Positions 7,754 through 43,065 of a DNA stretch of 64,000 nucleotides are shown piece after piece. The stretch comes from Bugula neritina. Taxonomy: Eukaryota > Animalia > Bryozoa. The stretch spans positions 15,442,998 through 15,506,997 of the forward strand of contig OZ037767.1 of NCBI GenBank assembly GCA_964035545.1. Reading direction: 5' to 3'. Position numbers and translations under genes: made by a program. Each line of letters opens with the position of its first letter. Position 1 is the first letter of the stretch. The notes beneath the pieces were generated by a model. The model searched no databases. It had not been told where the DNA came from and saw only the letters and a program-made list of their open reading frames with translations.

Positions 7754-9317
7754 TTCATTATTACTATGTCTAGCCAATTCAACCTTTAATCATGCAGTAA
7801 ATTGGCTTTGAGTTTGTAATAACTTTTATTTCTAGATTAGAGATTTATTTTGGAATGCAAAATACATTAATTAGTTTGCACATATGTAAGATACACAACT
7901 TGGTTTGCCTGTGCAATTGTAACACTACTCCAACCTTATCCTAAAAGGCCTAGACTATATATTTATTTTATGAATTTATTTTCAAATATAAGGATACAAC
8001 TTGTTTGGAAAAATAGATCATGTTGTTAATGAATCGCAAAGTAAATGGGGAAATCTAATTGATTACAAATCGCAAACATCCCACATCCTATATATATACT
8101 GCACACTTTAAGCCGCACAATTATAAATTGTATAATTAGTTTTAATTTTACTTTAGGTAATATTTTAAACAATTTTTTGTAGCAAAATAATTTCTCATAG
8201 ACATTTTCTTGAATTAATTTTCGTTGACATGTGTTATAATGAATGATATATTTTGATGTTTACTTTATGTAACATTTTAACAACTCATATACTAGTATTT
8301 GTTTATTATAGATATGTCTATAATTTAGAATGAAATGAGATAAATTGTGCTACATTGTATGGGTATGCTGCTTTAAGATGGCAATTTTATATTTTTGCTA
8401 TAGGTGGTGCTTATAAGCAAAACATATTATTATGATTATCAATATAATTATTATTATAATGGTGTTATAACATTGACATATGTAAAATAATATAAATATT
8501 GATTTTTACATTATTTTAGGTTAATGTTGAAACAAAGATTACGTAGAGATATTACTTTTATAGTTGTTTTTCATTACTTGGTGTATCTATTATGACAACA
8601 TGCATTGAAATTATTCGCCCACTCTCAGTTACACAACAACTTTATTATAACATCAGGAGAATCACAATGAAACATGATACCAACATTCTATCTTCCATTA
8701 GCATGAAATATTTGACAAAGTTAAACATTATCAGACATTCAAATGTTTACTGTCACTATTAGCATGAATATAGATTTTTCATACTTTTTATGACACTAAT
8801 AGCATGAATTATCTTTGTATTCTGTTTATTTATTATAAATAATACATATACTTTACCAGTTTTCTATATCCGACGATCTTGCTGCTATAACACACTTTAC
8901 GTTACTTAATAATTGCAAAGTAAATATCATAAGTACATCTCTGAAGTTGCAGACACTTTGAACTGTAAGAACAAAGTTTTTAACAAGGGAATAATAAGGA
9001 AAAATCTATAAATGAAAGTTTTTGTTGTATGTGGGCATTGTTATAGGCTCTTTCAATAAGTTCACTTCGTAGATGCTACAACAGTAAGTTACTAACAAAC
9101 TTTATTAATTTTATAGTGAAATATCATTTTCTTAAATTACATAATTCAGCAGTTTTACTTTTTATGTGGTATATAGCTGATTAAAGCACTATATAGAGCT
9201 GAGAAGCTCTGAACTTTAGTGAAATTTCTATTTCATTATCAGAAGTGGTTGGTGCGTGTATATTAGTAAATGACTGTACTGTATTCTATGTGTGCATATA
9301 ACTCTTGAAAAGACTCT

Positions 9318-9376
<59 letters not shown>

Positions 9377-9380
<4 letters not shown>

Positions 9381-9625
9381 GTACTGATACAATTTTGGAT
9401 ATAAAAATAAACTTGGATCTTCATTTTAGCGACTACAATATTGTTTCACGCAGTGCAAGCTACGATCATCAGGTCGTTGTGTGTACGGTTGAGTGCTTTT
9501 GTTTTGAAATTACTCAAGCGTACACACAACGACCTGATGATCGTAGCTCGCACTACGTGAAACAATATTGTAGTCAATAGAATGAAGATCTAAGTTTATT
9601 TTTATATCCGAAATTGTATTAGTAC

Positions 9626-9629
<4 letters not shown>
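9377..9629. mobile_element. Palindromic (foldback) MITE embedded in a (TA)n microsatellite
   Basis: tttggtactgatacaattttggatataaaaataaac... mirrors ...gtttatttttatatccgaaattgtattagtaccaaa over ~118-bp arms. (TA)n tracts flank both sides (9324-9377, 9629-9676). Confidence 0.85.
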
Positions 9630-9688
<59 letters not shown>

Positions 9689-9833
9689 ATATATATAGAT
9701 ATATAGATATATAGATATATATGATAAAGTAAAATATGCCATCACACCACTTTCTCTAAATAGATATCAAATATATAACACTATATACAGTCACATGTTA
9801 AGTAAACAAAGAATGTGTTATATCAGAGTAGAG

Positions 9834-12410
9834 ATGAAGAATATTCTAGAAGTATACGCTCTGATTCTCCTTATACATGTGACTACTTCAGAATACATGG
9901 GGTGTTATAAAGATGAAATAGAGAGAGCAAATTGCCTTTAGTCGGGGAAATTACTAACATGGCAATATACTTTTGTATAGGCTACTGCATCTATAGAGGT
10001 AAAGATAATACGACGTAAATCTGTTTTTCTATTTAATATATTATGCCATAATTATATAAACTTTATTAGATATGTGATGTATTGAAATTGTGATTCTTTT
10101 ACATCAATTATATGACTATTATTATCTTTTTCTCAAACATAATATAAGCATATTATAATAATATTATATTATATTCTTATACAGCAATTATATTTTTATT
10201 ATGTTGTTCTCATCCAGTTATATAATACTTATGGCATCTTGATATTTAATTATTCTTGTACAGCAACTATATAAACATTATATAATTCTTGTATAGTAAT
10301 TATAAAAATGTTTCATTATTATTGTATATTAGATATATAAACATTATATCATTATTCTATTGTAATTATATAAATGTTATCTGTATATTTTAGGCCAGAT
10401 GTATGCTGGTTTGCAGGATGGCAGACAATGATTCTGTGGTACAACCTTTGACCTCTATGGAGCTCTAGACAAATCAAGTTGTAGCAGTAGATGCACGGGA
10501 AATGCGAGTCAGATATGTGGGGGAAGCTGGGCAAACAGTGTATACAGAGCACTGTCAGGTAAGATGAGACATTTTTAGATAAAATGAGAAAAGTCCTTTA
10601 GGTAATACATGAAATTGGAGTTTTTTAATCTTCACAATACTTATCAAATTTTATTTAACCAAATATTTACTTTTACAGACGATTGTTATTCTAAAAAATT
10701 GGCTGATAGCGAAATAGTTTTTAAAGGAATATTAAAATAATTAAACTCAATTAAGAAAGTTTGAATGATTTGACCTTAATACTTCTGACAAAAAGTATTA
10801 TTACCATGAATTTTTAATTATTAACAACTAATAATTTGTTTAATCTATAGCTACATTGTTTAGTTTATTTCCACACTCTTGTAAGTAACAGTATATGGTA
10901 TAGAACAGTATATAACATGTTTTTTGTTGACTCGGGTAAAATTTTTGTAACTTTATGATAAACTATAATAACTTAGCTCTTTTTGATATGCTAAATAAAT
11001 GTACATATCTTTATTATGTTAAAGCTTGCTAACCTAAATAATTATGTATATTTTAAGATATATGTAATACATATTTATTTATTTAGTAATATTTACTTCT
11101 GTGTTTTTATGAGTTTCTAGAATCATAGTTTTATTGTTACATTATTTATTATTATACCATTTTTAGAAAATGTCAAAACACGAAAAAACAAACCCGCAAA
11201 CTTAGTCCACATCAGAAATATTGAAGTTAGAGAAATAAGTGAGGAAATCATATCCTTTATCGAACATCCGGCTGATTCTACTAAAATAATAGCAGCTACA
11301 TCAAAACAACTTGTAGAGATCAATCATCATGGAGAGTGTATAGCAGTAGCGGGTGTGCAGCTACAAAGTTGTGCCTATCGATCAAATGAATTTTCTTTTT
11401 CCTCAATCGATCATTTCATTTATGCCCAGTTCACCAAACTGCAAGTATCTCACAGTCTTTTCAACAAATCAGCCATTTTGGTTGCTGATGCAGGTAATCA
11501 CTGCGTAAAGTTTCTCATTCTAAAAAATTTATCATCTTTTGAGTTTGACAATTCAATAAATGACTACCATGTTGGTAAGTGTGGATCTTTTAAAAAAGAA
11601 CTTTTGACTGAAAATATTCAAAATTTAATTGATCCTAAAGAAATGGAGCTAAATAGCCCAAAACATCTTTCTCTGTACCATGACTCTGAGACTATCAGAC
11701 TGGTTGTTAACTGTGTACTAACAGAAGTATACTCTGTTATTGTTAGTATCTATCCAACTCACACTGTGGCATATGAGTACAGTGGACACCCTGGGTATGT
11801 TACTGATGTTTCTGAAAATCTCTATTGGCCATTATTTCGATCAAAAGGATTGAAAAGTCTTTCAACTGATAACAGCACATTAATAAACCAAATCCTTGTC
11901 ATTAATGGGAGTTACTCAACTACTGCAAATTATTATTGCGATTCCAGGAACAGTTCTGCTATTCCCAGACTGTTTCAAAGTTGGCCTCTAATAATTGCAA
12001 ATGGTGAATTGAAATCCCTGGTTTATAATTTGACAAGCAGTGAAATCAAACTAACTAACATAAATATTGCTAATCTTTCTACAAAAACACCCCCTGAGTT
12101 TAACCTGTTCACTACAACAAAGGAATCCGATCACATTATTCTCTACAGTCAAAGCCTAAAGAAATTTTATTATGCAAAGGCATTTTCTCGCTATCAGAAA
12201 ATTCTGGAAAGGTTCTGTAGTAAATATGTTATAGAAAAAGCAATTGTGGGTGGACCTGAAAGTTGTGCTTACATCTGTAGTAAATATGGTAGTCAGTGTG
12301 TTGCTTTTTCTGTTAATGATTATGATAATTCTTGCTACATTCATGACCACTTTGACTTGGCCGAGGCCTACATATCTAATGACTCAGCTTGTTATTTATC
12401 TATATCATAA
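9834..12410 (+). pseudogene. Gene B1: WSC / NHL-like / PAN-Apple protein, disabled in the WSC exons; exons 9834-9998, 10394-10558, 11167-12410
   Basis: MKNILEVYALILLIHVTTSEYMGCYKDEIERA is followed by a +2 shift (gcaAAttg) giving TAG at 9939-9941. Exon 2 has TGA at a conserved WSC Cys (Q*FCG, 10429-10431). The last exon is fully open, with an ILVADAGNHCV motif and the PAN Cys pattern. Confidence 0.85.
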
Positions 12411-12571
12411 TTATAACATATAATTGCATAGTTGAACACCACTTTCTGATGACAACATTAATGATGCTTTACTCTAACTTATGTTAATTTTTAATAATCA
12501 TAATTATATTATTTTCATTCACTTAAATATTTTATGGAAATGATACACAGTGGTTTTTAAAAATTATATGT

Positions 12572-12681
<110 letters not shown>

Positions 12682-13099
12682 TACTATATATACAGAGTCT
12701 GTACTATATATTACAGACGGTAGATTGCTATATTATATTTGTGTATCAACAAATCAATAAAATAAAAATCGAAGATATTGTTTATTTGAAGCTTTTTTGG
12801 AAATTTATTATAAATATTTGTAGGTTGTGTAATTACTGATTAATAAATAATATTTATAACAGATGGTTTCATTATAATTTTTAGATGACATTGTTTTAAA
12901 GAACATAATATGTATTAATTCAATCAAATTTATTTGACCCACAAGAAAATGCAGCACAATTATTTGTGAATTAAAAACTTCTTATTAAATAAAGATTGAG
13001 TAATAACCAATTCAGTATATTTTAACTATTGATATACTTATATAAGAGAGTAAGTTAAACAGAAATGTTCATCTTTGCACAGATACTTGCAAGAATATC

Positions 13100-13478
13100 T
13101 ATAGTGTATATAGAACTTTATAGATATAGAAAAGTTATAGATATAGAATAGTTATAAGTATAGAATAGTTATAGATATAGAATAGTTATAATTATAGAAT
13201 AGTTATAGATATAGAATAAGTATAAATATTAAATAGTTATAAATATAGAATAGTTATACATTAGATATAAAATAGTTATAGATATAAAATAGTTATAGAT
13301 ATAGAATAAGTATAAATATTAAATAGTTATAAATATAGAATAGTTATAGATATAAAATAGTTATAGATATAGAATAGTTATAAATATATAGAATAGTTAT
13401 AAATATAGAATAGTTATAGATATAGAATAGTTATAATTATAGAATAGTTATAGATATAGAACAGTTATAAATATAGAA
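13100..13478. repeat. 16-bp minisatellite (tatagaatagttatag/a)
   Basis: About 20 or more tandem units; essentially identical copy at ~35985-36360. Confidence 0.9.
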
Positions 13479-15769
13479 GTGCTGCAGTCAATAATTTAAG
13501 CAACTTTACAAACACATTATTATATATATACATAAACATTCACCAGATATATTTAATAATTTATGATGCACATGGTCAAACATGCAATTAATATTACTAA
13601 TATTTGCTTATAAATACAGTCATACTAATATTGTTTACATGACTGCATTTGTTGAAAAGAATGGTAATAACAGTTTTAAAAGACAATTAAAATTTTTTAC
13701 TGGGTTATGTAATATAATTTGTTTAACTGTTTCTTTTAATTACCAAATATCTAAAATAATATTTTAATGAACACAAAGTTATTCACTGTTTTTCCACTCT
13801 TTTTAAATCTGTAAAACAAAAATTTTTAGATTTAATAACTAAATAATAAACAGTGTCTGTTTATTTTTTTAAAAATAGACAGTGTTTATTTTAATCCTTC
13901 TTAAGAAACTTAATTAGGTAAAAAGTAAATTATTAAAAATTGAAAAATAATTGCCAAATCCAAGATACATCAATTCAATATTACATTTAAATTTATAAGA
14001 CAAATGACTTTTTGTTTTTGATAATAGATTTTTGTGTTTCATTATACAAGCTCTTTTGTAAAAAATGTTCTTATAATTATTAATATATTTTAAGAAATGA
14101 TTACAGTTTCAAAAGTGGTCAAATTACTGCAGCTGTTTGGCTTCAGTGAAACGACTCTTGTTGCTTAAAGCTAATGGGCTTTGAAATTATGTTTGTTATA
14201 GAAGGATTATTAATGTAAATATCTAAAGAAGCTTATAGACTAAGACTTAGTGCCTTGTAATTAAATATTATTTTACAGATATCCTATAAACACTGACATA
14301 TAACTCACAACAAAAAAGGTATTCTTTCATGTTTGAATATTGGAACTCAAAATTATTGATTAATTTTTAATTTTTAATATATAAACAAAACATGGAAGTT
14401 TACTATATACATTTAAAAACTTTAAGCTACGAAGCAACACTAAGTACAACAATTTCAGACCAGCTATAGAGATCAAATCTTGAAGAATAAAATCCAATCT
14501 TGTCAAGATACTGAAATCAGGTATTATGAGAATTAAATATATATACCTACATTTAACTTTCTATGTTTCACCTTTTACATGCAGTTTATGCTTTATGATT
14601 TATAAATTTTACACTCTATCCTTTATATTCTGTTTTCATATTGCATATTTAATATTTTATGCTCTAAGTTTCACCTTCCAGGTGTGACATTCTACATTTT
14701 AAGTTCTACATTTTGTATTCTAAATACCGTATCATATTAGAGGTAATGTCTTATACATTTTAGTAAAATGATCATAATATCACAGCCTTGCACTTGAAGT
14801 ATAAATTTTATAAGAATATAAGATGTTATAAAATTAGTTGGTGATAAAGTTTGAAAATGCACAATAGCATGAAGTTATTAATTATTCTAGTATTGATGAG
14901 CCATGAGTTTATTTTACAAGTTGTTTTTATTATGAGCTGATACATTTTCTATAAGCTGTAAAAGTGTTAGGATTGTTAGAATAACAAAAAAATAGTTTTT
15001 TCCTCTAAATGTTAAAACGAGACCTTGAAATTATTAATTTAAAGTGTTTTAGGAGTTTATTTAAACTTAATATATAGTTTTATAAAATAGGTTTAATAGT
15101 TATTATGTTTAACTTGAAAAACAAAAAAACTCTTATTTAATAATAAATTTCAAAATGTTGAGATATTATTCTTTACTAAAATGCCTATATTGTATAAGGT
15201 AATAACATTTTGCAAATTGTTATTAGCAGATGACAAATGAAATACCAATACGTTCTTATTCACAGTATAATGGTTCCATCCCAGCTAGATAGACACTACT
15301 TTTTATTTTGGTACCATATAATTATATAGTAATATATACCTATATATATATAGCGATATAACTGTTTCATTGATTGCTAAATAGCTAAAATGCTAATAAC
15401 TTTATTAGCTAACATGAATTATTTGGAATATTATTCTAATTTTCACAAATTTGTGAGAGACAAAAGACAGTGTAATACAATAACAATAGACATTACATTT
15501 AATTATTGACTACCCATTCACAAAATATCTGTTCAAACAAGAAGCAAAATATATTCAAAATTAATGTTTATGCAAATCAAAGAAATTGTTAATGTGCTAA
15601 ATATGTGCTTTATTTAAGTATATATATATTTTTTAATAATATTAAAATAAATTGCACATAAAATATATATTGTACCAAAATAAATTAGTAGCGTCTAACT
15701 GAGAGTTGCTATATATATCTAGGATAACACCCGAACAAACTGTTTTTATTAACAGCAGCTGTCTAGAAG

Positions 15770-18746
15770 ATGCATCAATATCTGATGTGTATAGCACTGG
15801 TTCCTATAGTTTATGGTTCAGTGTACATGGGTTGTTACAAGGACACCTCAACTAGAGCTCTACCATTGAGGTATGATTCCAATGACATGACAGTCGACCT
15901 TTGTATTGGCTACTGCATTTACAGAGGTAAGTATTCCATTCACTTACTTAGTTGATTTTTTACAATACAGTGAAATTGCAACCTATAAAGCAGGGCTGAT
16001 AAATTAGCCATCATTTTAGGAGTACGTCACAATGTCATGAAACTTCAAAGGAACTGCAATTATCCTGGAATAAGATTGCTACATACTTATACTTAAAATA
16101 ATTGTGCTTGCTTTAAAGTTTAGACATTTTATCTGTGAGCTACATGCAGTTGGTATCTAGCATAGTGACCCGCAGTGGTATAGGGGTCAGAGCGTTTGCC
16201 TACAAGTAAGCACAAGGTAATGAGTTTGAGCCCCATTATAAGCCAGTAGTGATGTTAGGAAGAGCATCCAGTCATAATTGCTCCTGTGCCTCATATGAAT
16301 AAGTCTTAAGCCAGCTTTAACAAAAACCCCTTCTATCAGAGATCTTCTCATAGGTATGGTGACTATAAACTTGTGTGAGTTGGTATATATTAGCATGTGT
16401 GCACATAATAATATATCCAAAAAAACTTGCATGTCGCAATATATATTGAATATCTATATAACTTTGAAATCTATAGCTAACTAGTTGTTTGATTGGCTAT
16501 AAATATCATATTACAGTAAATTATTTAAAGTGAATTGATTATATCAAATTAATATGTTAGCAAGCATAAAGTCAACTAATATTAATAATCGCCTTAGTTG
16601 TAAACTGATTCAACAAATGTAAATAAATCAATAGAGAAAGTTTATGCATACAAGCAATTAGCTGCTTGTTATATTTGTTCAGTAAGTGTAAATATTATAC
16701 ATGTTCAGAAACTGCTTGCTTAAATTTAGCTAATTAATAGCAAGTATAAACATTTTGTTATTTATATAAATGCTATGATATTAAGTTTGTCAGAGGAAAA
16801 TTCAATTATACAATTATTATTTGACTAGTCCTAGAAAAGTTTATGAATATTAAGATTATTTGAAGGATACTCAAATGATAGTTTATTAATCAAAGTTTTA
16901 TTCACATTAACTAGAAAGCCCAGCTCTCTATCACTATATAGCCATGATATATTTGCTAAAATCTTGGGAAAAAGTAACTATGTTATAATGGCAAAATTGC
17001 TACTTATATATTTTCTAGTACATATATATGCTCATTGAACCATAATTTTTAATCAAATAAAATGTTGAAATGAATATTATTCAACCCTGCTGGTATTTCA
17101 AGGTCACCCCTACGCTGGTTTGCAGACGGATGACACTTGTTTCTGTGGAAGTGAGTACGACAAGTATGGAATCGGGGAAGAAACGAGCTGCAGAGACCCT
17201 TGTAAAGGAAATACTAGTCAGATATGTGGTGGAGGCTGGAGAAACAGTGTCTATAAAATAACTGGAAAAGGTGCGTAAAAAATGAACTCAAAATTAAAAT
17301 TGAACAATTAAATTTCAATGCAAATAAGGAAAATAAAAATATTTTTGATGCTTATTTACTATTATTTTAAAGCCTAAAAATTTGTATATTTGCACCTAAA
17401 TTTTAATAAGATTTTAATCGTAAAATATGCTTAGATTTAAAGTCACTTCAACAATGTATCAAACAGCTAAATTTTGTTCAAATTATATATACTGTATAGA
17501 AAAGAATGAATCTAGCCAAAGTGTACCAAGACCCATTCGCTATGTCGGCAAAATTGAAGTTGGAGAACTAACTGATGACATCATATCCTTTATTGAACAT
17601 CCAACTGATTCTACTAAAATAATGGCAGCTACATCAAAACAACTTGTAGAGATCAATCATCATGGAGACTGTACAGTAGTAGCTGGTGTGCAGCTGCAAG
17701 GTTGTTTGCATACGCAAAACTCACTTTCATTTGCTTCCATCAGCCATATTGTTTATGCTCACTTCACTGATCTGAATATACATCACTTCCTGTTTAACAA
17801 GTCTGTCATCTTGGTAGCTGATGAAGGTGACCATTGCATTAAATTCTTTGAATTTCAACAGAAACCTTTGTTCTCTAATTTTCAAACCTACAAAATTGGC
17901 AATTGTGGACTTCCACAAGTATCCCCTTTGTTAGCTGATAAAGTTCGACACTTTAGTGAACCTCAGGCAATCATGCTGAACACCCCAAAACATCTTTCTC
18001 TGTACCATGACTCTGAGACTATTAGACTGGTTGTTAACTGTGTACTGACTGAAGTATACTCTGTTATTGTTAGTATCTATCCAACTCACACTGTAGCATA
18101 TGAGTACAGTGGACACCCAGGGTATGTAACTGATATGTTGAATTATTTTGATTTTCCAATGATGAAATCACAAGGATTTAGCAGTGTGGAGGGCAAAAGT
18201 GATTTAGCAAAAGTAGAATTGCATATTGAGGTGAACTTTGGCACATCAATTGAGGTTTATAGTTATACTTGCGAGTCAAATATCAGTTCAGAAGTTCCCA
18301 GAGTGTTAAATGATTTACCAACAATATTAATCAATGGTAAAGTTCGGTATTTAATTTACAATCAGACTAGTCAGGAGCTGTTCATACGGAATTTACAAGT
18401 TTTAAATCTTCCCCTGGAAGCAGAGTTTAAACTGAGTCAGTATACTGTAGTACGTGATTCTCTCATACTCTACAGTCAAAGCCTGAAAACATTTTATTTC
18501 ACAAAGAAATATTCTCAATATCAGAGAGTTAGTGAGAGTCAGTGTAGTCAGTCTATTATACAAAAGTTACAGGTGAATGGAGCTGAATCTTGTGCTTATG
18601 TCTGCTTTAAATATGGCGACCTTTGTGTTTACTTTTCATTTAATAGTGTAGACAACTTCTGTTATATTCATAATGAGGTCAGCAATACTAGTATCATTAC
18701 TACTCCAGGTTTCTACTGTTACACATCTTTAAATTATATATTTTAA
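15770..18746 (+). CDS. Gene C1: secreted WSC / NHL-like / PAN-Apple protein, ~523 aa, intact; exons 15770-15926, 17103-17270, 17500-18746
   Basis: Signal-like MHQYLMCIALVPIVYG, WSC split over two exons (YMGCYKD..CIGYC|G.PYAGLQ..CFCG..C..C.GN..CGG.WRNSVY), ILVADEGDHCIKFF NHL-like motif and C-terminal C..ESCAYVC..C..FSF..C.IH..CY PAN pattern. Spliced length 1572 nt with no internal stop and no TM segment. Confidence 0.88.
16167..16370 (+). mobile_element. Putative degraded tRNA-derived SINE in intron 1 of gene C1
   Basis: A-box-like tggtatagggg (16176) and B-box-like gagtttgagccc (16222) at tRNA spacing, followed by an aggaagagcatcc core. GC-richer than the flanks. The 3' end is uncertain. Confidence 0.4.
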
Positions 18747-21700: not shown

Positions 21701-23509
21701 TACTTTTTTTAGTCCCAACTGTTTCAAAATATTCATTCATCATAATGCAGTTTCCATTCAGCTAATGAGTTTTAATCTTGCCATAACTTAAATTTGTCAG
21801 ATTTAATAGCTTAGAAAAGCAATGCTTTATTTGGTTATAACAGTTAAGTGAAGCTGTTGAGTTAACTGTTACAACTGGACTGGTGAAGTAGCATTGCTAA
21901 TCAACTTCATGCTAGGGGTGTGTAAATAGTATCCACAAAATACTGTGATTGCTATTTTTTGGCATTCCTTGAACCCAATGTGCATTTGTTATGTCTGAAA
22001 AAGCTATGGGCAGAGCGCCAGACATGTAATGAAAATCAGTGATTGTGTCGTAAGTGGTGGTATTTATTAAGGGATGGTATTCACTTGTAACTTTAAGACA
22101 AGATCAAATGCTGTATTTCAGGTGACCATTACAGCTTAATTAGTCACAATGTTACTCACTTTGTAAATCCTAATAGTGACCACGTATTCATCCCCAGCCA
22201 TTGTTATATAATGCCTTAAATACTGTATCTCCGCTGTGAGGCGGTTCAAAATGACATTTCTGAGACTTGTTAGTTGCCCAATTTCATGGACCAGTCATTT
22301 GCATGGGCAAGATTTCAAGTGTGTGCCTGTTTGTATACTAGTGTTCATTTCCTCTGGCCCATAGAGAGCAATTCATGTGGGTAAAGTTCATGCTTCTAAC
22401 ATTTTTGGTTGTTGGAGTTGGGCTCGCTGAATAACTACCAGCCAATTAGGTGACTACGACAGAGACCATTCGCACTTGCGTTGAGAATGCAGAGCGACAA
22501 GTGCGAAGGTTTTCTCAACCCGCACAGTGGACACCTTTGCTACTTGTGATTTCAATTTTCACACGCGAAAATTTCCAGTTATTATAATGCAGCATAGGGC
22601 ATATAAGTCTACCTTAACTTTGATTAAAAAGTTTACAGATCATTATTAGCTAAACTGCATGATTACAAAGTTTTCAGGAGAGTTTTCATATACATGAACC
22701 AGTTTTTAAAATTTAGCAATGAAATCACACCAAAGCTAACTGCTATATAACCCATATATATCATTATAATAGGTGAATTAGTATAATATATATGAAAGTC
22801 TTTTAATTATATATATATACATTTTCTTTTAGACTGATCCTACAATAATCTTCAACTTCCTCATGTTAAGGAATCGAGAAAAAAATTGGGAAAAACTATA
22901 AAACCATACATGTACAATTAATTTCAAATTTTCCATTTCCCTCAATCTCTTCCAAAGTTGACGCTACAAAGCAAGCTGATTGAACATTGCCTAACAGTCT
23001 CGTGATTTAATACATCGATTGCCATGTGTTCTGGATGATTTATTATTATAGGAAGTTTAAGAAGCTCCTCTGCTTGATTACAAGATTATTTCTTAGTTAT
23101 AATATAACATTCACGCTGCCTATATATACTTGTTTACCAGCACTTATTAATAATTCACAGCTTAGATTCAATTTTAAATGGTGAAAGTACCAATTATGTG
23201 TATATACCATAGCTTGTCATTTTAAAGCAAAGTTTTTCTGAAAGTAATAAAAGTTGCTTTACTTGCAAGCTGGTGCAGGCAATGATGTGAGTCAGATGCC
23301 GCCAACTGTTCTGCCAACTTGTACCTAAGTAGAACAGAGATCCTGTCAATCAGACGCAGCCATTCAGTAAGTTGCTCATCTGAATATATATATAACACTT
23401 TTATTCAGGCTTTCTCTTCAAAGTTATTTATTTTTGCACTTCATGCACTTGACCATATATTCGGGCATACAAACAAATTACTGCATCCATTATGTGGGGC
23501 ATTCACTGT

Positions 23510-23555
<46 letters not shown>

Positions 23556-23603
23556 GCTGTCTCTTGAACTGTTTGTAAAATACATTTTCATGGGCTGTTT
23601 TAG

Positions 23604-24770
23604 ATTCCTTCTCAAGTTGTATAAAAAAGGGGACACCACCCGCACTCAAATACAACAGATAGTTGAGTCATCTGAAGCTTTGGTACAGATGACAACAGCC
23701 TCTATTCGTAGAGATGTAAATGATTTAGTAAGAGAAATTGGCTTGAACCATATCAAACAGGTCACTACATTGAATACGACGCTCCATAGCACTTCTATGA
23801 CATTCGAAGGTTTAGAGACGGATTTTAAAAGAATTATTGAGTTTGAAAAGCGAGGCTTGATCATGCCACAGAGGTATCTGGTAGGTAATAGAGAAGACTC
23901 TACAAAAAATGGCGCTAAAATTCAAACTCCATGCTACGCTCAGTATGTGCCCCTTATCCAAACCCTTTCAAAATTAAATGTTGCATCACCAATTCCATCA
24001 GCTAATGGTGACATAGTAGGTTTTGCTGATGGTAGTCTCTATAAAACTTCAAACTTCCTTCAGCAACATCCAGATGCCCTTCAACTAGCTTTATACAATG
24101 ATGATATAGAGCTGGCAAACCATTTAGTTTCGAAAGCTGGTATTCATAAGGTTTCCATGTTTTATGTCTCTGTCAAGGGTAGAACTCCTTTTCAGTTGAA
24201 AGACATTCATCTTGTCATAGCTGCTTACACATCTGATCTCAAAGAATTTGGTTATTCAAAAATTATGAAACCTCTCTTTACAGACTTACAGAAGCTAGAG
24301 CAAGGTGTTCAAGTAAGCTCTGGTGATTCAGGTACAAGGATTATTCAAGCGGTGCTCGTCCAGTTTATAGGTGACAATCTGGCGGCTAACCAATTACTAG
24401 GCTTTGTAGCCAGCTTTTCCGCTCAGCACTATTGCAGATTCTGCTATATGGCTCTCGATCAAGCAAAACATGCCGTGGAAAGCTCAAAAGACCTGCTGAG
24501 AAGTCAGGAACAACACCGTGCTGATGTGGCTGCAGTGGAGCAGGACATTGATAATTATAAACACACTGGAGTTAAGCAATCTCTAATCCTTGACCAGCTG
24601 CAGAATTTCTCATCAATAGAAAGTACAGTGCCTGACTGCATGCATGATTTCCTAGAAGAAGTTTGTAAAACTGAACTGTCACTTATTCTAACTGCATGCT
24701 CTGGCTAAGGAGAAGCTGCTTTCTCTTGAAATCCTAAATTCACAGATTAAATTATACAATTATAGGTGAG
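23604..24770 (+). mobile_element. Truncated CMC/EnSpm (CACTA)-like transposase
   Basis: Motifs LQLALYNDDIE..N.L, K.SMFY, PL..DL..LE.G, FIGDNLAANQLLGF..SF..HYCRFC and PDCMHDFLE are typical of animal EnSpm-like transposases. Stop/frameshift at 24708; C-terminal half missing. Confidence 0.75.
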
Positions 24771-30492: not shown

Positions 30493-32054
30493 TATTACTA
30501 TGTCTAGCCAATTCAACCTTTAACCATGCAGTAAATTGGCTTTGAGTTTGTAATAACTTTTATTTCTAGATTAGAGACTTATTTTGGAATGCAAAATACT
30601 TTAATTAGTTTGCACATATGTAAGATACACAACTTGGTTTGCCTGTGCAATTGTAACACTACTCCAACCTTATCCTAAAAGGCCTAGACTATATATTTAT
30701 TTTATGAATTTATTTTCAAATATAAGGATACAACTTGTTTGGAAAAATAGATCATGTTGTTAATGAATCGCAAAGTAAATGGGGAAATCTAATTGATTAC
30801 AAATCGCAAACATCCCACATCCTATATATATACTGCACACTTTAAGCCGCACAATTATAAATTGTATAATTAGTTTTAATTTTACTTTAGGTAATATTTT
30901 AAACAATTTTTTGTAGCAAAATAATTTCTCATAGACATTTTCTTGAATTAATTTTCGTTGACATGTGTTATAATGAATGATATATTTTGATGTTTACTTT
31001 ATGTAACATTTTAACAACTCATATACTAGTATTTGTTTATTATAGATATGTCTATAATTTAGAATGAAATGAGATAAATTGTGCTACATTGTATGGGTAT
31101 GCTGCTTTAAGATGGCAATTTTATATTTTTGCTATAGGTGGTGCTTATAAGCAAAACATATTATTATGATTATCAATATAATTATTATTATAATGGTGTT
31201 ATAACATTGACATATGTAAAATAATATAAATATTGATTTTTACATTATTTTAGGTTAATGTTGAAACAAAGATTACGTAGAGATATTACTTTTATAGTTG
31301 TTTTTCATTACTTGGTGTATCTATTATGACAACATGCATTGAAATTATTCGCCCACTCTCAGTTACACAACAACTTTATTATAACATCAGGAGAATCACA
31401 ATGAAACATGATACCAACATTCTATCTTCCATTAGCATGAAATATTTGACAAAGTTAAACATTATCAGACATTCAAATGTTTACTGTCACTATTAGCATG
31501 AATATAGATTTTTCATACTTTTTATGACACTAATAGCATGAATTATCTTTGTATTCTGTTTATTTATTATAAATAATACATATACTTTACCAGTTTTCTA
31601 TATCCGACGATCTTGCTGCTATAACACACTTTACGTTACTTAATAATTGCAAAGTAAATATCATAAGTACATCTCTGAAGTTGCAGACACTTTGAACTGT
31701 AAGAACAAAGTTTTTAACAAGGGAATAATAAGGAAAAATCTATAAATGAAAGTTTTTGTTGTATGTGGGCATTGTTATAGGCTCTTTCAATAAGTTCACT
31801 TCGTAGATGCTACAACAGTAAGTTACTAACAAACTTTATTAATTTTATAGTGAAATATCATTTTCTTAAATTACATAATTCAGCAGTTTTACTTTTTATG
31901 TGGTATATAGCTGATTAAAGCACTATATAGAGCTGAGAAGCTCTGAACTTTAGTGAAATTTCTATTTCATTATCAGAAGTGGTTGGTGCGTGTATATTAG
32001 TAAATGACTGTACTGTATTCTATGTGTGCATATAACTCTTGAAAAGACTCTAAA

Positions 32055-32138
<84 letters not shown>

Positions 32139-32142
<4 letters not shown>

Positions 32143-32387
32143 GTACTGATACAATTTTGGATATAAAAATAAACTTGGATCTTCATTTTAGCGACTACAA
32201 TATTGTTTCACGCAGTGCAAGCTACGATCATCAGGTCGTTGTGTGTACGGTTGAGTGCTTTTGTTTTGAAATTACTCAAGCGTACACACAACGACCTGAT
32301 GATCGTAGCTCGCACTACGTGAAACAATATTGTAGTCAATAGAATGAAGATCTAAGTTTATTTTTATATCCGAAATTGTATTAGTAC

Positions 32388-32391
<4 letters not shown>
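32139..32391. mobile_element. Palindromic MITE in (TA)n, duplicate of 9377-9629
   Basis: Same sequence; only the flanking TA tract lengths differ. Confidence 0.85.
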
Positions 32392-32442
<51 letters not shown>

Positions 32443-32587
32443 ATATATATAGATATATAGATATATAGATATATATGATAAAGTAAAATATGCCATCACA
32501 CCACTTTCTCTAAATAGATATCATATATATAACACTATATACAGTCACATGTTAAGTAAACAAAGAATGTGTTATATCAGAGTAGAG

Positions 32588-35284
32588 ATGAAGAATATTC
32601 TAGAAGTATACGCTCTGATTCTCCTTATACATGTGACTACTTCAGAATACATGGGGTGTTATAAAGATGAAATAGAGAGAGCAAATTGCCTTTAGTCGGG
32701 GAAATTACTAACATGGCAATATACTTTTGTATAGGCTACTGCATCTATAGAGGTAAAGATAATACGACGTAAATCTGTTTTTCTATTTAATATATTATGC
32801 CATAATTATATAAACTTTATTAGATATGTGATGTATTGAAATTGTGATTCTTTTACATCAATTATATGACTATTATTATCTTTTTCTCAAACATAATATA
32901 AGCATATTATAATAATATTATATTATATTCTTATACAGCAATTATATTTTTATTATGTTGTTCTCATCCAGTTATATAATACTTATGGCATCTTGATATT
33001 TAATTATTCTTGTACAGCAACTATATAAACATTATATAATTCTTGTATAGTAATTATAAAAATGTTTCATTATTATTGTATATTAGATATATAAACATTA
33101 TATCATTATTCTATTGTAATTATATAAATGTTATCTGTATATTTTAGGCCAGATGTATGCTGGTTTGCAGGATGGCAGACAATGATTCTGTGGTACAACC
33201 TTTGACCTCTATGGAGCTCTAGACAAATCAAGTTGTAGCAGTAGATGCACGGGAAATGCGAGTCAGATATGTGGGGGAAGCTGGGCAAACAGTGTATACA
33301 GAGCACTGTCAGGTAAGATGAGACATTTTTAGATAAAATGAGAAAAGTCCTTTAGGTAATACATGAAATTGGAGTTTTTTAATCTTCACAATACTTATCA
33401 AATTTTATTTAACCAAATATTTACTTTTACAGACGATTGTTATTCTAAAAAATTGGCTGATAGCGAAATAGTTTTTAAAGGAATATTAAAATAATTAAAC
33501 TCAATTAAGAAAGTTTGAATGATTTGACCTTAATACTTCTGACAAAAAGTATTATTACCATGAATTTTTAATTATTAACAACTAATAATTTGTTTAATCT
33601 ATAGCTACATTGTTTAGTTTATTTCCACACTCTTGTAAGTAACAGTATATGGTATAGAACAGTATATAACATGTTTTTTGTTGACTCGGGTAAAATTTTT
33701 GTAACTTTATGATAAACTATAATAACTTAGCTCTTTTTGATATGCTAAATAAATGTACATATCTTTATTATGTTAAAGCTTGCTAACCTAAATAATTATG
33801 TATATTTTAAGATATATGTAATACATATTTATTTATTTAGTAATATTTACTTCTGTGTTTTTATGAGTTTCTAGAATCATAGTTTTATTGTTACATTATT
33901 TATTATTATACCATTTTTAGAAAATGTCAAAACACGAAAAAACAAACCCGCAAACTTAGTCCACATCAGAAATATTGAAGTTAGAGAAATAAGTGAGGAA
34001 ATCATATCCTTTATCGAACATCCGGCTGATTCTACTAAAATAATAGCAGCTACATCAAAACAACTTGTAGAGATCAATCATCATGGAGAGTGTATAGCAG
34101 TAGCGGGTGTGCAGCTACAAAGTTGTGCCTATCGATCAAATGAATTTTCTTTTTCCTCAATCGATCATTTCATTTATGCCCAGTTCACCAAACTGCAAGT
34201 ATCTCACAGTCTTTTCAACAAATCAGCCATTTTGGTTGCTGATGCAGGTAATCACTGCGTAAAGTTTCTCATTCTAAAAAATTTATCATCTTTTGAGTTT
34301 GACAATTCAATAAATGACTACCATGTTGGTAAGTGTGGATCTTTTAAAAAAGAACTTTTGACTGAAAATATTCAAAATTTAATTGATCCTAAAGAAATGG
34401 AGCTAAATAGCCCAAAACATCTTTCTCTGTACCATGACTCTGAGACTATCAGACTGGTTGTTAACTGTGTACTAACAGAAGTATACTCTGTTATTGTTAG
34501 TATCTATCCAACTCACACTGTGGCATATGAGTACAGTGGACACCCTGGGTATGTTACTGATGTTTCTGAAAATCTCTATTGGCCATTATTTCGATCAAAA
34601 GGATTGAAAAGTCTTTCAACTGATAACAGCACATTAATAAACCAAATCCTTGTCATTAATGGGAGTTACTCAACTACTGCAAATTATTATTGCGATTCCA
34701 GGAACAGTTCTGCTATTCCCAGACTGTTTCAAAGTTGGCCTCTAATAATTGCAAATGGTGAATTGAAATCCCTGGTTTATAATTTGACAAGCAGTGAAAT
34801 CAAACTAACTAACATAAATATTGCTAATCTTTCTACAAAAACACCCCCTGAGTTTAACCTGTTCACTACAACAAAGGAATCCGATCACATTATTCTCTAC
34901 AGTCAAAGCCTAAAGAAATTTTATTATGCAAAGGCATTTTCTCGCTATCAGAAAATTCTGGAAAGGTTCTGTAGTAAATATGTTATAGAAAAAGCAATTG
35001 TGGGTGGACCTGAAAGTTGTGCTTACATCTGTAGTAAATATGGTTTGTTTGTTTGTTTTTTATTTTGTCATAGTCGGGAAAAAATTAATTGAGAAAAAAA
35101 TAAACAAAATGACAGGGCCTATGGCGCAATAGCACTGTAGCTAGTCGGGGCACCGAGCCATGGTAGTCAGTGTGTTGCTTTTTCTGTTAATGATTATGAT
35201 AATTCTTGCTACATTCATGACCACTTTGACTTGGCCGAGGCCTACATATCTAATGACTCAGCTTGTTATTTATCTATATCATAA
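32588..35284 (+). pseudogene. Gene B2: same lesions as B1 plus an insertion in the PAN domain; exons 32588-32752, 33148-33312, 33921-35284
   Basis: Same +2 shift and TGA as B1. A 120-bp insertion at 35045 truncates the ORF (..CSKYGLFVCFLFCHSREKIN*). Confidence 0.88.
35045..35159 (-). mobile_element. 115-bp non-LTR retroelement 3' fragment / SINE with 5-bp TSD (ATGGT)
   Basis: Absent in B1. Flanked by ATGGT at 35040-35044 and 35160-35164. The minus strand ends AATAAAAAACAAACAAACAA (simple-repeat tail). Confidence 0.8.
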
Positions 35285-35445
35285 TTATAACATATAATTG
35301 CATAGTTGAACACCACTTTCTGATGACAACATTAATGATGCTTTACTCTAACTTATGTTAATTTTTAATAATCATAATTATATTATTTTCATTCACTTAA
35401 ATATTTTATGGCAATGATACACAGTGGTTTTTAAAAATTATATGT

Positions 35446-35563
<118 letters not shown>

Positions 35564-35984
35564 TACTATATATACAGAGTCTGTACTATATATTACAGAC
35601 GGTAGATTGCTATATTATATTTGTGTATCAACAAATCAATAAAATAAAAATCGAAGATATTGTTTATTTGAAGCTTTTTTGGAAATTTATTATAAATATT
35701 TGTAGGTTGTGTAATTACTGATTAATAAATAATATTTATAACAGATGGTTTCATTATAATTTTTAGATGACATTGTTTTAAAGAACATAATATGTATTAA
35801 TTCAATCAAATTTATTTGACCCACAAGAAAATGCAGCACAATTATTTGTGAATTAAAAACTTCTTATTAAATAAAGATTGAGTAATAACCAATTCAGTAT
35901 ATTTTAACTATTGATATACTTATATAAGAGAGTAAGTTAAACAGAAATGTTCATCTTTGCACAGATACTTGCAAGAATATCTAT

Positions 35985-36360
35985 AGTGTATATAGAACTT
36001 TATAGATATAGAAAAGTTATAGATATAGAATAGTTATAAGTATAGAATAGTTATAGATATAGAATAGTTATAATTATAGAATAGTTATAGATATAGAATA
36101 AGTATAAATATTAAATAGTTATAAATATAGAATAGTTATACATTAGATATAAAATAGTTATAGATATAAAATAGTTATAGATATAGAATAAGTATAAATA
36201 TTAAATAGTTATAAATATAGAATAGTTATAGATATAAAATAGTTATAGATATAGAATAGTTATAAATATATAGAATAGTTATAAATATAGAATAGTTATA
36301 GATATAGAATAGTTATAATTATAGAATAGTTATAGATATAGAACAGTTATAAATATAGAA
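35985..36360. repeat. 16-bp minisatellite, duplicate of 13100-13478
   Basis: Directly visible tandem units. Confidence 0.9.
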
Positions 36361-38651
36361 GTGCTGCAGTCAATAATTTAAACAACTTTACAAACACATT
36401 ATTATATATATACATAAACATTCACCAGATATATTTAATAATTTATGATGCACATGGTCAAACATGCAATTAATATTACTAATATTTGCTTATAAATACA
36501 GTCATACTAATATTGTTTAAATGACTGCATTTGTTGAAAAGAATGGTAATAACAGTTTTAAAAGACAATTAAAATTTTTTACTGGGTTATGTAATATAAT
36601 TTGTTTAACTGTTTCTTTTAATTACCAAATATCTAAAATAATATTTTAATGAACACAAAGTTATTCACTGTTTTTCCACTCTTTTTAAATCTGTAAAACA
36701 AAAATTTTTAGATTTAATAACTAAATAATAAACAGTGTCTGTTTATTTTTTTAAAAATAGACAGTGTTTATTTTAATCCTTCTTAAGAAACTTAATTAGG
36801 TAAAAAGTAAATTATTAAAAATTGAAAAATAATTGCCAAATCCAAGATACATCAATTCAATATTACATTTAAATTTATAAGACAAATGACTTTTTGTTTT
36901 TGATAATAGATTTTTGTGTTTCATTATACAAGCTCTTTTGTAAAAAATGTTCTTATAATTATTAATATATTTTAAGAAATGATTACAGTTTCAAAAGTGG
37001 TCAAATTACTGCAGCTGTTTGGCTTCAGTGAAACGACTCTTGTTGCTTAAAGCTAATGGGCTTTGAAATTATGTTTGTTATAGAAGGATTATTAATGTAA
37101 ATATCTAAAGAAGCTTATAGACTAAGACTTAGTGCCTTGTAATTAAATATTATTTTACAGATATCCTATAAACACTGACATATAACTCACAACAAAAAAG
37201 GTATTCTTTCATGTTTGAATATTGGAACTCAAAATTATTGATTAATTTTTAATTTTTAATATATAAACAAAACATGGAAGTTTACTATATACATTTAAAA
37301 ACTTTAAGCTACGAAGCAACACTAAGTACAACAATTTCAGACCAGCTATAGAGATCAAATCTTGAAGAATAAAATCCAATCTTGTCAAGATACTGAAATC
37401 AGGTATTATGAGAATTAAATATATATACCTACATTTAACTTTCTATGTTTCACCTTTTACATGCAGTTTATGCTTTATGATTTATAAATTTTACACTCTA
37501 TCCTTTATATTCTGTTTTCATATTGCATATTTAATATTTTATGCTCTAAGTTTCACCTTCCAGGTGTGACATTCTACATTTTAAGTTCTACATTTTGTAT
37601 TCTAAATACCGTATCATATTAGAGGTAATGTCTTATACATTTTAGTAAAATGATCATAATATCACAGCCTTGCACTTGAAGTATAAATTTTATAAGAATA
37701 TAAGATGTTATAAAATTAGTTGGTGATAAAGTTTGAAAATGCACAATAGCATGAAGTTATTAATTATTCTAGTATTGATGAGCCATGAGTTTATTTTACA
37801 AGTTGTTTTTATTATGAGCTGATACATTTTCTATAAGCTGTAAAAGTGTTAGGATTGTTAGAATAACAAAAAAATAGTTTTTTCCTCTAAATGTTAAAAC
37901 GAGACCTTGAAATTATTAATTTAAAGTGTTTTAGGAGTTTATTTAAACTTAATATATAGTTTTATAAAATAGGTTTAATAGTTATTATGTTTAACTTGAA
38001 AAACAAAAAAACTCTTATTTAATAATAAATTTCAAAATGTTGAGATATTATTCTTTACTAAAATGCCTATATTGTATAAGGTAATAACATTTTGCAAATT
38101 GTTATTAGCAGATGACAAATGAAATACCAATACGTTCTTATTCACAGTATAATGGTTCCATCCCAGCTAGATAGACACTACTTTTTATTTTGGTACCATA
38201 TAATTATATAGTAATATATACCTATATATATATAGCGATATAACTGTTTCATTGATTGCTAAATAGCTAAAATGCTAATAACTTTATTAGCTAACATGAA
38301 TTATTTGGAATATTATTCTAATTTTCACAAATTTGTGAGAGACAAAAGACAGTGTAATACAATAACAATAGACATTACATTTAATTATTGACTACCCATT
38401 CACAAAATATCTGTTCAAACAAGAAGCAAAATATATTCAAAATTAATGTTTATGCAAATCAAAGAAATTATTAATGTGCTAAATATGTGCTTTATTTAAG
38501 TATATATATATTTTTTAATAATATTAAAATAAATTGCACATAAAATATATATTGTACCAAAATAAATTAGTAGCGTCTAACTGAGAGTTGCTATATATAT
38601 CTAGGATAACACCCGAACAAACTGTTTTTATTAACAGCAGCTGTCTAGAAG

Positions 38652-41631
38652 ATGCATCAATATCTGATGTGTATAGCACTGGTTCCTATAGTTTATGGTT
38701 CAGTGTACATGGGTTGTTACAAGGACACCTCAACTAGAGCTCTACCATTGAGGTATGATTCCAATGACATGACAGTCGACCTTTGTATTGGCTACTGCAT
38801 TTACAGAGGTAAGTATTCCATTCACTTACTTAGTTGATTTTTTACAATACAGTGAAATTGCAACCTATAAAGCAGGGCTGATAAATTAGCCATCATTTTA
38901 GGAGTACGTCACAATGTCATGAAACTTCAAAGGAACTGCAATTATCCTGGAATAAGATTGCTACATACTTATACTTAAAATAATTGTGCTTGCTTTAAAG
39001 TTTAGACATTTTATCTGTGAGCTACATGCAGTTGGTATCTAGCATAGTGACCCGCAGTGGTATAGGGGTCAGAGCGTTTGCCTACAAGTAAGCACAAGGT
39101 AATGAGTTTGAGCCCCATTATAAGCCAGTAGTGATGTTAGGAAGAGCATCCAGTCATAATTGCTCCTGTGCCTCATATGAATAAGTCTTAAGCCAGCTTT
39201 AACAAAAACCCCTTCTATCAGAGATCTTCTCATAGGTATGGTGACTATAAACTTGTGTGAGTTGGTATATATTAGCATGTGTGCACATAATAATATATCC
39301 AAAAAAACTTGCATGTCGCAATATATATTGAATATCTATATAACTTTGAAATCTATAGCTAACTAGTTGTTTGATTGGCTATAAATATCATATTACAGTA
39401 AATTATTTAAAGTGAATTGATTATATCAAATTAATATGTTAGCAAGCATAAAGTCAACTAATATTAATAATCGCCTTAGTTGTAAACTGATTCAACAAAT
39501 GTAAATAAATCAATAGAGAAAGTTTATGCATACAAGCAATTAGCTGCTTGTTATATTTGTTCAGTAAGTGTAAATATTATACATGTTCAGAAACTGCTTG
39601 CTTAAATTTAGCTAATTAATAGCAAGTATAAACATTTTGTTATTTATATAAATGCTATGATATTAAGTTTGTCAGAGGAAAATTCAATTATACAATTATT
39701 ATTTGACTAGTCCTAGAAAAGTTTATGAATATTAAGATTATTTGAAGGATACTCAAATGATAGTTTATTAATCAAAGTTTTATTCACATTAACTAGAAAG
39801 CCCAGCTCTCTATCACTATATAGCCATGATATATTTGCTAAAATCTTGGGAAAAAGTAACTATGTTATAATGGCAAAATTGCTACTTATATATTTTCTAG
39901 TACATATATATGCTCATTGAACCATAATTTTTAATCAAATAAAATGTTGAAATGAATATTATTCAACCCTGCTGGTATTTCAAGGTCACCCCTACGCTGG
40001 TTTGCAGACGGATGACACTTGTTTCTGTGGAAGTGAGTACGACAAGTATGGAATCGGGGAAGAAACGAGCTGCAGAGACCCTTGTAAAGGAAATACTAGT
40101 CAGATATGTGGTGGAGGCTGGAGAAACAGTGTCTATAAAATAACTGGAAAAGGTGCGTAAAAAATGAACTCAAAATTAAAATTGAACAATTAAATTTCAA
40201 TGCAAATAAGGAAAATAAAAATATTTTTGATGCTTATTTACTATTATTTTAAAGCCTAAAAATTTGTATATTTGCACCTAAATTTTAATAAGATTTTAAT
40301 CGTAAAATATGCTTAGATTTAAAGTCACTTCAACAATGTATCAAACAGCTAAATTTTGTTCAAATTATATATACTGTATAGAAAAGAATGAATCTAGCCA
40401 AAGTGTACCAAGACCCATTCGCTATGTCGGCAAAATTGAAGTTGGAGAACTAACTGATGACATCATATCCTTTATTGAACATCCAACTGATTCTACTAAA
40501 ATAATGGCAGCTACATCAAAACAACTTGTAGAGATCAATCATCATGGAGACTGTACAGTAGTAGCTGGTGTGCAGCTGCAAGGTTGTTTGCATACGCAAA
40601 ACTCACTTTCATTTGCTTCCATCAGCCATATTGTTTATGCTCACTTCACTGATCTGAATATACATCACTTCCTGTTTAACAAGTCTGTCATCTTGGTAGC
40701 TGATGAAGGTGACCATTGCATTAAATTCTTTGAATTTCAACAGAAACCTTTGTTCTCTAATTTTCAAACCTACACAATTGGCAATTGTGGACTTCCACAA
40801 GTATCCCCTTTGTTAGCTGATAAAGTTCGACACTTTAGTGAACCTCAGGCAATCATGCTGAACACCCCAAAACATCTTTCTCTGTACCATGACTCTGAGA
40901 CTATTAGACTGGTTGTTAACTGTGTACTGACTGAAGTATACTCTGTTATTGTTAGTATCTATCCAACTCACACTGTAGCATATGAGTACAGTGGACACCC
41001 TGGGTACGTTATTACCAACATGTTAAATCATTTTGATTTTCCAATGATGAAATCACAGGGATTTAGCAGTGTGGAAAACAAAAGTGATTTAGCAAAGGTT
41101 GATTTGCATATTGAGGATAATCTTGGCAAAATAATCGGGGTTTATTTTTATTTTTGTGAGTCAACTATTAGTTCAGAAGTTCCCAGACTGTTAGTTGATT
41201 TGCCAACAATATTAATGAGTGGTAAAATTCAGTATTTGATTTACAATCATACTAGTCAGGAGCTGTTCATACGGAATTTACAAATTTTACATCTTCCTCT
41301 GGAAGCAGAGTCTAAACTGAGTCAGTATAATGTAGTACGTGATTCTCTCATACTCTACAGTCAAAGCCTGAAAACATTTTATTTCACAAAGAAATATTCT
41401 CAATATCAGAGAGTTAGTGAGAGTCAGTGTAGTCAGTCTATTATACAAAAGTTACAGGTGAATGGAGCTGAATCTTGTGCTTATGTCTGCTTTAAATATG
41501 GCGACCTTTGTGTTTACTTTTCATTTAATAGTGTAGACAACTTCTGTTATATTCATAATGAGGTCAGCAATACTAGTATCATTACTACTCCAGGTTTCTA
41601 CTGTTACACATCTTTAAATTATATATTTTAA
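38652..41631 (+). CDS. Gene C2: secreted WSC / NHL-like / PAN-Apple protein, ~524 aa, intact; exons 38652-38808, 39985-40152, 40382-41631
   Basis: Matches C1 except one K>T change and a divergent patch at 41001-41330. Spliced 1575 nt is open. Confidence 0.88.
39049..39252 (+). mobile_element. Duplicate of the putative SINE in gene C intron 1
   Basis: Same sequence as 16167-16370. Confidence 0.4.
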
Positions 41632-43065
41632 ATGTTTAAACAATTTAATTTGATTCTTTTAACATTGATACTATAATATCCCAATTTTAATTTAGTAAGT
41701 TATCACACAAATAATAACTTATTGAATGAGTTTTCTGACAAAGAACATAATTTCTTTCTGATGCTGGTAACATTTACAATTATATTTATGTTTACAGTAT
41801 AATATCTATGTTTCGTACAATATTTTAGTTATGTTGACATTTATGCTATAGCTGTTGTGAATTTAATAAACATTAATGTCGATTCTAAAATGTATTTTAT
41901 CTCAATATATAACTAGATATACCATTTCAATCAAAAAAGGAGAACAATAATCAATTAAGGTAATTGGAAGGGCACAACAGAAACCTATATTATATGAAAT
42001 GGGCAGAAGTGGACATCTCTAGATATTCATAGTATCCCAGTGATAATTTCACTTATTGACTGCAAATGCATATTATTTGTCTGATTAGCCAATTAAAAAT
42101 CAGTGACTATGTTTTCAACAGCCATGCTTGTGTTTTACTAAATCAGCCAATCAAATAATTGCTAAGGTAGCATTCAATTCTCTTAACTAACTTATTACAT
42201 TATTTCGTCAGTTTAAAACTTCAAAGAAGCATCCAATATGTTATAAAGGATAATGAGTGCTTCTAGTAACATGTGACAGCATGAACTCTGATTGGTATCG
42301 CTGACTGCGTTATTACTAAGTGAAAAAACATTGAGGTAACAAAACAGTAAAAACTTTTTCAATCTGCTTTATTTAACATATTATATACTTATTATATATT
42401 TAGATGCTGAGTAGTGAATTTATCACTGGAACTCATGCATGCAAGATAACAGAAATATGTATGAGGCAAAATTTAAAAATATGATGAAGTAATTTAGCGA
42501 AGCAGTAACAAAATTAGTATAATATAATAATTGATATATATAGTAAGAAATATTGTTATTGTGGGCTATAATAAACTATTTTAGAATTAAACTAATGCAT
42601 GTTATATATTCATAAATCAATCAAGCTTTACATTATAACATATAACAGCCTAATTGTTACACATAATATTTCTATTCATTATATAATTCAAGGTGCTTTC
42701 TTCGGTAATTTCATGGCAAAAACGAACACTATATAATAATGCTATATGCTGTATCAACTGTTATAAAATGATAATAAAAACTGATAATATATAATATAAA
42801 GTAATATAAATGCATAATCAAACAACTCAGGTAAAAACTAAACAATAATAAAGTCTAAAAAGTTTATCAAAATACAGCACAAAGCTATTACAAAGTATAT
42901 TTCCTTGCTATATATCATGATAGTACATGGCTGCATGAATAGAATCTATTACCAGTTATATAACTTACTTGATCATAACGTCTTAAAGCTAATAGTATAT
43001 GCAGCTTATAACCAGTTAGAATGTCAACGTAAGTGAGGTAAAGACATTTACTGTTGAAGAGCTAT

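Follow-up and report, generated by a model that had tools for sequence, protein, structure and literature searches.

Programmed cassette systems, such as the chicken Ig pseudo-V genes, Borrelia vlsE, Neisseria pilE/pilS and the trypanosome VSG genes, are characterised by silent donors, a single site of expression and a large number of young variants. A divergence peak under gene conversion has been described for human red/green opsin exon 5 and modelled for RHD/RHCE (Fawcett and Innan, 2011, PMC3924837), and the GOT1p1/GOT1p2 genes of Tigriopus californicus carry divergence islands amid conversion, with rare transfers of segments giving rise to new mosaic proteins (Willett, 2013, PMC3728101).

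The window (the whole 64-kb stretch of Bugula neritina DNA analysed here) contains two tandem units lying 22.9 kb apart, each with a gene of type C (C1 and C2). An earlier note, made from the sequence alone, had described about 23 residue changes and one insertion confined to a single 330-bp patch of these genes, with near-identical flanks, an intact frame and one other residue change, and all of this was borne out. By global alignment 46 substitutions separate the two patches, together with a 3-nt indel that preserves the frame (24 residues changed plus one insertion), and the outermost differences, at 18119/41001 and 18445/41330, coincide with the limits first proposed (Table 1). The upstream tracts differ by only seven substitutions in 10.25 kb, besides microsatellite lengths and a 120-bp insertion in B2, and the 313 bp downstream match exactly; the single residue change outside the patch is K130T (at 17893). 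Past these tracts the units diverge by at least 5%. When the 47 substitutions of the exon were scattered at random 20 000 times, the maximum per 327-bp window was 27 (mean 18) against the 46 observed, and the clustering is not due to chance. A third copy of at least the B-to-C part of the unit 1 tract lies at contig C3:15.179–15.188 Mb.

Table 1. Positions in the window of the C genes, their patches and the surrounding tracts.
Feature	Position	Strand	Evidence or remark
Near-identical tract, unit 1	7867..18118	+	twin 30601–41000
C1 coding exon 1	15770..15926	+	ATG, hydrophobic stretch, GT donor; PF01822 E 8e-5 (inferred splicing)
C1 coding exon 2, second WSC half	17103..17270	+	AG/GT, phase 1; PF01822 E 1e-9 (inferred splicing)
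C1 last exon, NHL-like β-propeller and C-terminal PAN, stop codon	17500..18746	+	profiles and predicted fold
Block 1, nearly the same in all three paralogue types (A, B, C)	17571..17705	+	alignment
Block 2, homogenised across paralogue types B and C	17984..18134	+	its end forms the patch's 5′ boundary; twin in B1 11657–11807
C1 patch, type I haplotype	18119..18445	+	residues 206–314 of last-exon product (structure-model numbering)
Short type II-like tract in the type I patch of C1	18366..18398	+	ten consecutive informative sites, 18375–18393, join C1 with type II
313-bp tract with no differences between C1 and C2	18446..18758	+	twin 41331–41643
Near-identical tract, unit 2	30601..41000	+	alignment to unit 1
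C2 coding exon 1	38652..38808	+	twin of C1 exon 1, offset 22882; zero differences
C2 coding exon 2, second WSC half	39985..40152	+	alignment to C1
C2 last exon, carrying the type II patch	40382..41631	+	alignment to C1
Inverted repeat, left arm	40972..40986	+	13/15 match, right arm 41347–41361
C2 patch, type II haplotype	41001..41330	+	predicted later blades of β-propeller

Under the inferred splice model the C gene has three coding exons, the first of which, in C1, encodes a signal-peptide-like start and the first half of a WSC domain. Domain searches, run one exon at a time, gave 38.8 bits for the second WSC half (Pfam cut-off 27.8) and 20.5 bits for PAN_1, slightly below its cut-off of 21.4; the NHL signal has two bases, a profile match to Brat (E 5e-4) and the predicted fold. 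In that fold the last exon forms a β-propeller at residues ~10–338 followed by PAN (mean pLDDT 80, pTM 0.79), and its best structural matches are the NHL propellers of a teneurin-like protein, SOQ1, NHLRC2 and PAL (Z 16–18; propeller rmsd ~4 Å over ~260 residues), which have the same fold at only 8–12% identity; this match carries no information on the function of C. Rotifer NHL-repeat and PAN clusters in the ESM Atlas likewise join a β-propeller to a PAN domain (Atlas score 0.85, a lead only). The C protein ends in PAN and a stop codon with no membrane anchor seen, and the product, with its signal peptide, WSC domain, NHL-like β-propeller and PAN domain, is therefore probably secreted. Where records carry names, the WSC–propeller–PAN family comprises bryozoan proteins only (B. 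neritina and Watersipora subatra, the Watersipora member retaining the WSC domain), and our literature search found no paper joining a WSC domain, an NHL repeat and a PAN domain; as far as sequence records indicate, the A/B/C gene family is undescribed and apparently restricted to bryozoans.

In the predicted structure the patch covers a low-confidence loop (212–232), a hairpin and the subsequent blades, and among distant homologues it is the least conserved part of the protein (16% identity vs 24–41% elsewhere). Two of the changes, S253F and T255F, lie two residues apart on one predicted strand (pLDDT ~60) and would point to the same side. Besides this pair, the fixed differences between the types include E250G and G230N.

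Three paralogue types (A, B and C) make up a tandem array at contig C3:15.15–15.90 Mb, with ten patch-bearing C copies, ten B copies and about eight A copies or fragments, and remoter family members (30–33% identity) lie at contig C1:3.834–3.839 Mb, contig C2:29.55 Mb and contig C3:11.75, 15.42 and 15.90 Mb, beyond the array or at its margin. Copies beyond the window were compared as 4-kb loci (given L numbers below) and match tables. The patch had first been called hypervariable; the ten C copies instead show two haplotype classes and recombinants between them, i.e. the segment is dimorphic, as described from one haploid assembly and one outgroup. Type I comprises C1, L002, L007 and L010, type II comprises C2, L004, L005, L006 and L009, and L008 is a hybrid; copies of the two types interleave along the chromosome. 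Patches differ at 42–59 sites between classes and at 0–30 within a class, while the parts of the exon outside the patch show 0–15 differences among most copies on the 5′ side and 0–8 on the 3′ side. The C2 patch has 8–11 differences to L004, L005 and L006 and 46–55 to type I copies, and that of C1 just six differences to L002 over 18119–18368. Localised hypermutation was considered and rejected, as the same alleles recur in other copies. No matching island was found in A or B, where diversity in the corresponding region is 0.03–0.08 and 0.03–0.06 respectively, and metagenome scans yielded no further C alleles.

Both patch types are old. The type I–II distance in the patch equals the distance to the C gene of the JGI colony (0.158 in each case, ratio 1.00), an outgroup taken from a short contig of a short-read metagenome that may be a collapsed consensus. 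The exon flanks, by contrast, are at 0.028 and 0.018 between types vs 0.081 and 0.082 to the JGI colony (ratios 0.34 and 0.21), and are thus 3–5 times more alike between types than to the other colony's orthologue; this contrast between patch and flanks is significant (Fisher p 7e-6). Since the synonymous sites are equally divergent (dS 0.28–0.29 between types I and II in the patch), the two versions reflect age and not a burst of amino-acid change, and these distances suggest that the two C lineages split at about the time when this genome and the JGI colony lineage did. An equal distance to the other colony might also be left by introgression of one patch type from another, sibling lineage within the B. 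neritina complex, with the flanks homogenised afterwards, and in 18231–18368 the outgroup does join type I (FastTree support 0.99). Type I is, however, at dS 0.28 from the JGI gene, so that the JGI colony was not the donor, and in the 5′ part of the patch (18119–18230) the outgroup joins type II, weakly; we regard introgression as improbable.

The check by dN/dS that the earlier note had proposed gave no signal of positive selection. Between the C1 and C2 patches dN/dS is 0.41 (95% bootstrap 0.19–0.87), equal to the value that the exon's 5′ part gives when set against the outgroup; values for the patch range from 0.41 to 0.52 and are not higher than in that 5′ part, and the ratio does not differ between fixed and polymorphic changes (MK-type table, p = 1). 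Positive selection over the whole patch was rejected on this basis (dN/dS < 1). Selection against conversion can act without dN/dS > 1.

Gene conversion is at work in this family, as the earlier note had supposed. A recombination test across the C copies gave p < 2e-4, and the patches of L008, L009 and C1 are mosaic, with L008 switching from type I to type II near 18232–18247. The short type II-like tract in C1 (Table 1) reads as a micro-conversion. The breakpoints within the patch are several and lie at scattered positions. Block 2 provides evidence from between paralogues: the B and C genes of the JGI colony share substitutions at 17991, 18081 and 18093 that are absent from each of the 17 B and C copies of this genome in the comparison, and this block evolves in concert between B and C, whose proteins are ~50% identical. 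Homogenisation of block 2 among ~20 B and C copies erases old differences and thereby makes the patch start sharply on its 5′ side. L007 and L008 have a further, smaller dimorphic tract in common (17928–17983), and the last exon of B has smaller dimorphic stretches at codons ~60–80 and 140–160. Patchwork variation is general in the A/B/C family.

A genome search for donors, also proposed by the earlier note, matched the patch versions (searched with the C2 patch and the L002 patch) to the ten C gene copies only, none of them exact: the nearest differ at 19/327 sites (C1) and 8/330 sites (C2), although ~0 differences should remain after a swap no older than the flanks suggest (0.07% divergence), with the proviso that an exact donor could reside on another haplotype. 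This result bears on the possibility that C2 (or C1) is a full recent duplicate that then received one 330-bp conversion from a paralogue or allele outside this haplotype (polymorphism capture). One such event would account for the identity on both sides and for the private allele 3′ of the patch (at 18451, inside the identical 313-bp tract), which is confined to C1 and C2 among the copies, and transfers of this kind are described (PMC3728101). Besides the missing donor, private changes in both patches speak against it, as do the 3′ flanks, which pair with copies of like patch type. That of C1 is 99% identical to type I L007 over 3 kb, a shared dispersed repeat included, and that of C2, from 42087, shows 0–2% differences to type II L004/L005 in most 100-bp bins (L008 is also nearly exact). 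Because of these flank affinities each gene appears to have kept its native patch, and we hold duplication followed by a swap to be rather unlikely.

The account that we favour, and consider likely, is that the patch represents an old divergence island, kept while germline interlocus conversion homogenised its flanks within a tandem family. Both the process, germline conversion, and the sequence of steps are our inference. Types I and II would have diverged at roughly the parting of this genome from the JGI colony lineage, after which germline interlocus gene conversion and unequal exchange would have homogenised the rest of the exon and the flanks, invading the 330-bp stretch only in part. 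The native patch would be of type I in C1 and of type II in C2, both sides having been equalised by a recent ~10-kb conversion and a short 313-bp one, or by a single discontinuous tract, and rarer short conversions within the patch may have made the mosaics L008, L009 and C1. A point against this reading is that it requires either two tracts or a single one that leaves out precisely the patch.

The earlier note had offered, as one option, a segment protected from homogenisation by selection; protection fits the data best, and selection as the protector is not shown by a dN/dS of 0.41. Conversion depends on homology, and a weakly constrained stretch may drift past the similarity at which conversion is efficient. 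A self-reinforcing mismatch barrier in such a region has a slightly better than even chance of being what maintains the island, and selection for two binding surfaces somewhat less than an even one; two functional surfaces under selection are plausible in view of the structure model.

The tandem arrangement of C1 and C2 is less certain than the dimorphism, which stands independently. The assembly might have set two haplotypes in tandem, as units 1 and 2 or as the look-alike block lying 270 kb off, with C1 and C2 as alleles or haplotype-specific copies: the HiFi data (27.37 Gb in 2.82 M reads, PMC11480708) have a mean read length of ~9.7 kb, near that of the 10.2-kb identical tract, and the distant block is 99–99.8% identical, a level possible for alleles. 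The outer flanks of units 1 and 2 are nevertheless 5–17% different with unlike insertions (to the left of the shared upstream core the three units differ by 6–10%), ten copies whose flanks are distinct all show the dimorphism, and HiFi reads should cross 330 bp and its flanks easily, so that the patch would be no polishing error. An assembly effect is accordingly improbable. The block itself, ~270 kb upstream (contig C3:15.157–15.221 Mb vs 15.428–15.465 Mb), repeats the order B, C 3′ fragment, B, C 3′ flank at 99–99.8%, and is either a segmental duplication of recent date or a second haplotype that was not purged.

The cassette swap between fixed arms, the other option in the earlier note, found no support: the patch occurs in the ten C genes only, no exact donor exists among them, breakpoints lie inside the patch and the 3′ flanks follow the patch type. 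A programmed or somatic cassette is unlikely in general and, as an exchange whose fixed arms are block 2 and the LYSQSLK anchor, extremely so. The 5′ edge is indeed sharp at the end of block 2, the reading frame is kept, a 13/15 inverted repeat flanks the patch and a deletion in two other copies (L028 and L029) ends 25 bp past it; on the other hand, the two classes are old (dS 0.29) where many young variants would be looked for, breakpoints are scattered, and silent truncated donor cassettes holding the variable segment alone were absent, the patches matching only the ten C genes. No recombinase gene was found among the long ORFs of the 64-kb window. Of the codon shuffles, 30% produced an inverted repeat of some kind (1% had the two arms as near to the ends of the patch, a post hoc figure), the arms are conserved coding sequence and the match is lost in B, where the right arm is altered; for these reasons the repeat is treated as probably due to chance. 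The deletion in L028 and L029 removes 2 kb (window 16480–18470), and with it the second WSC exon and the propeller, and has only 3 nt of microhomology at its junction (1500–1515 of the locus in L028).

Four copies (L009, L010, L028 and L029) are broken or deleted, which fits the usual birth-and-death picture, and a further unit at contig C3:15.335 Mb has lost ~1.8 kb covering the last exon. B1 and B2 (9834–10560 and 35045–35160) resemble pseudogenes, with a frameshift and a stop in the WSC exons, the 120-bp insertion in B2 brings a stop into the PAN region, and A1 has a frameshift near 4865. Several repeats accompany the genes: a MITE-like inverted-repeat element of 350–430 bp with AT-microsatellite ends upstream of B (9330–9676 and 32055–32479), a dispersed 2.2-kb repeat of at least 35 copies (~86% identity) inserted 3′ of C1 (19500–21660) and of L007, a Plavaka-like transposase remnant (E 0.007) at 23434–24708, and, at 58796–61405, an ORF for a LINE reverse transcriptase that ends in a C-terminal zinc finger. 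At contig C3:17.26–17.40 Mb, two short stretches of the flank downstream of C2 have at least eight tandem matches, which suggest another tandem array, 1.8 Mb off.

The divergence island points to where a secreted protein may have two functionally different versions, and the traits of the array (copy turnover, pseudogenes, mosaic alleles and carbohydrate-binding-type domains) resemble those of invertebrate recognition gene clusters. It is conceivable, though we think it unlikely, that the array serves bryozoans as a locus for recognition (of self and non-self, or in the binding of symbionts or microbes) in which two long-balanced versions of one propeller surface predate the lineage split and conversion makes hybrid specificities. 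The literature searched did not describe a recognition locus of this kind for Bryozoa, a group in which the molecular genetics of immunity and colony recognition is nearly blank, and the array is a defined candidate locus.

Like programmed cassettes, the patch is a variable segment bounded by conserved sequence and open to frame-safe exchange, but the silent donors, single expression site and many young variants of those systems were not seen in the C array. Allorecognition genes of the Hydractinia Alr and Botryllus fuhc type encode a membrane-anchored product and have very many alleles, which predict fusion; in C no anchor was seen. The SpTransformer (Sp185/333) genes of the sea urchin are likewise small and clustered, with a long last exon, mosaics and nearby short tandem repeats (PMC5491942, PMC8634487); the protein is unrelated, immune induction is known there, and internal repeat 'elements' are absent from C. 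GOT1p1/GOT1p2 shares islands and mosaics with the C genes but is a pair of housekeeping enzymes, whereas C forms a multi-copy array of secreted proteins. In opsin exon 5 and RHD/RHCE, as here, tandem duplicates are homogenised save for one short coding stretch as old as a lineage split; there the selected residues are known and two gene types are involved, whereas here ten copies carry the island within one long exon. The C genes combine flanks that are closer between paralogues than between orthologues, a peak that reaches the divergence of orthologues and independent evidence of conversion. The pattern thus matches the known divergence island and not the undescribed mechanism that the earlier note had suspected: the mechanism is known, and the patch is a clean new example of conversion and divergence rather than a new system.
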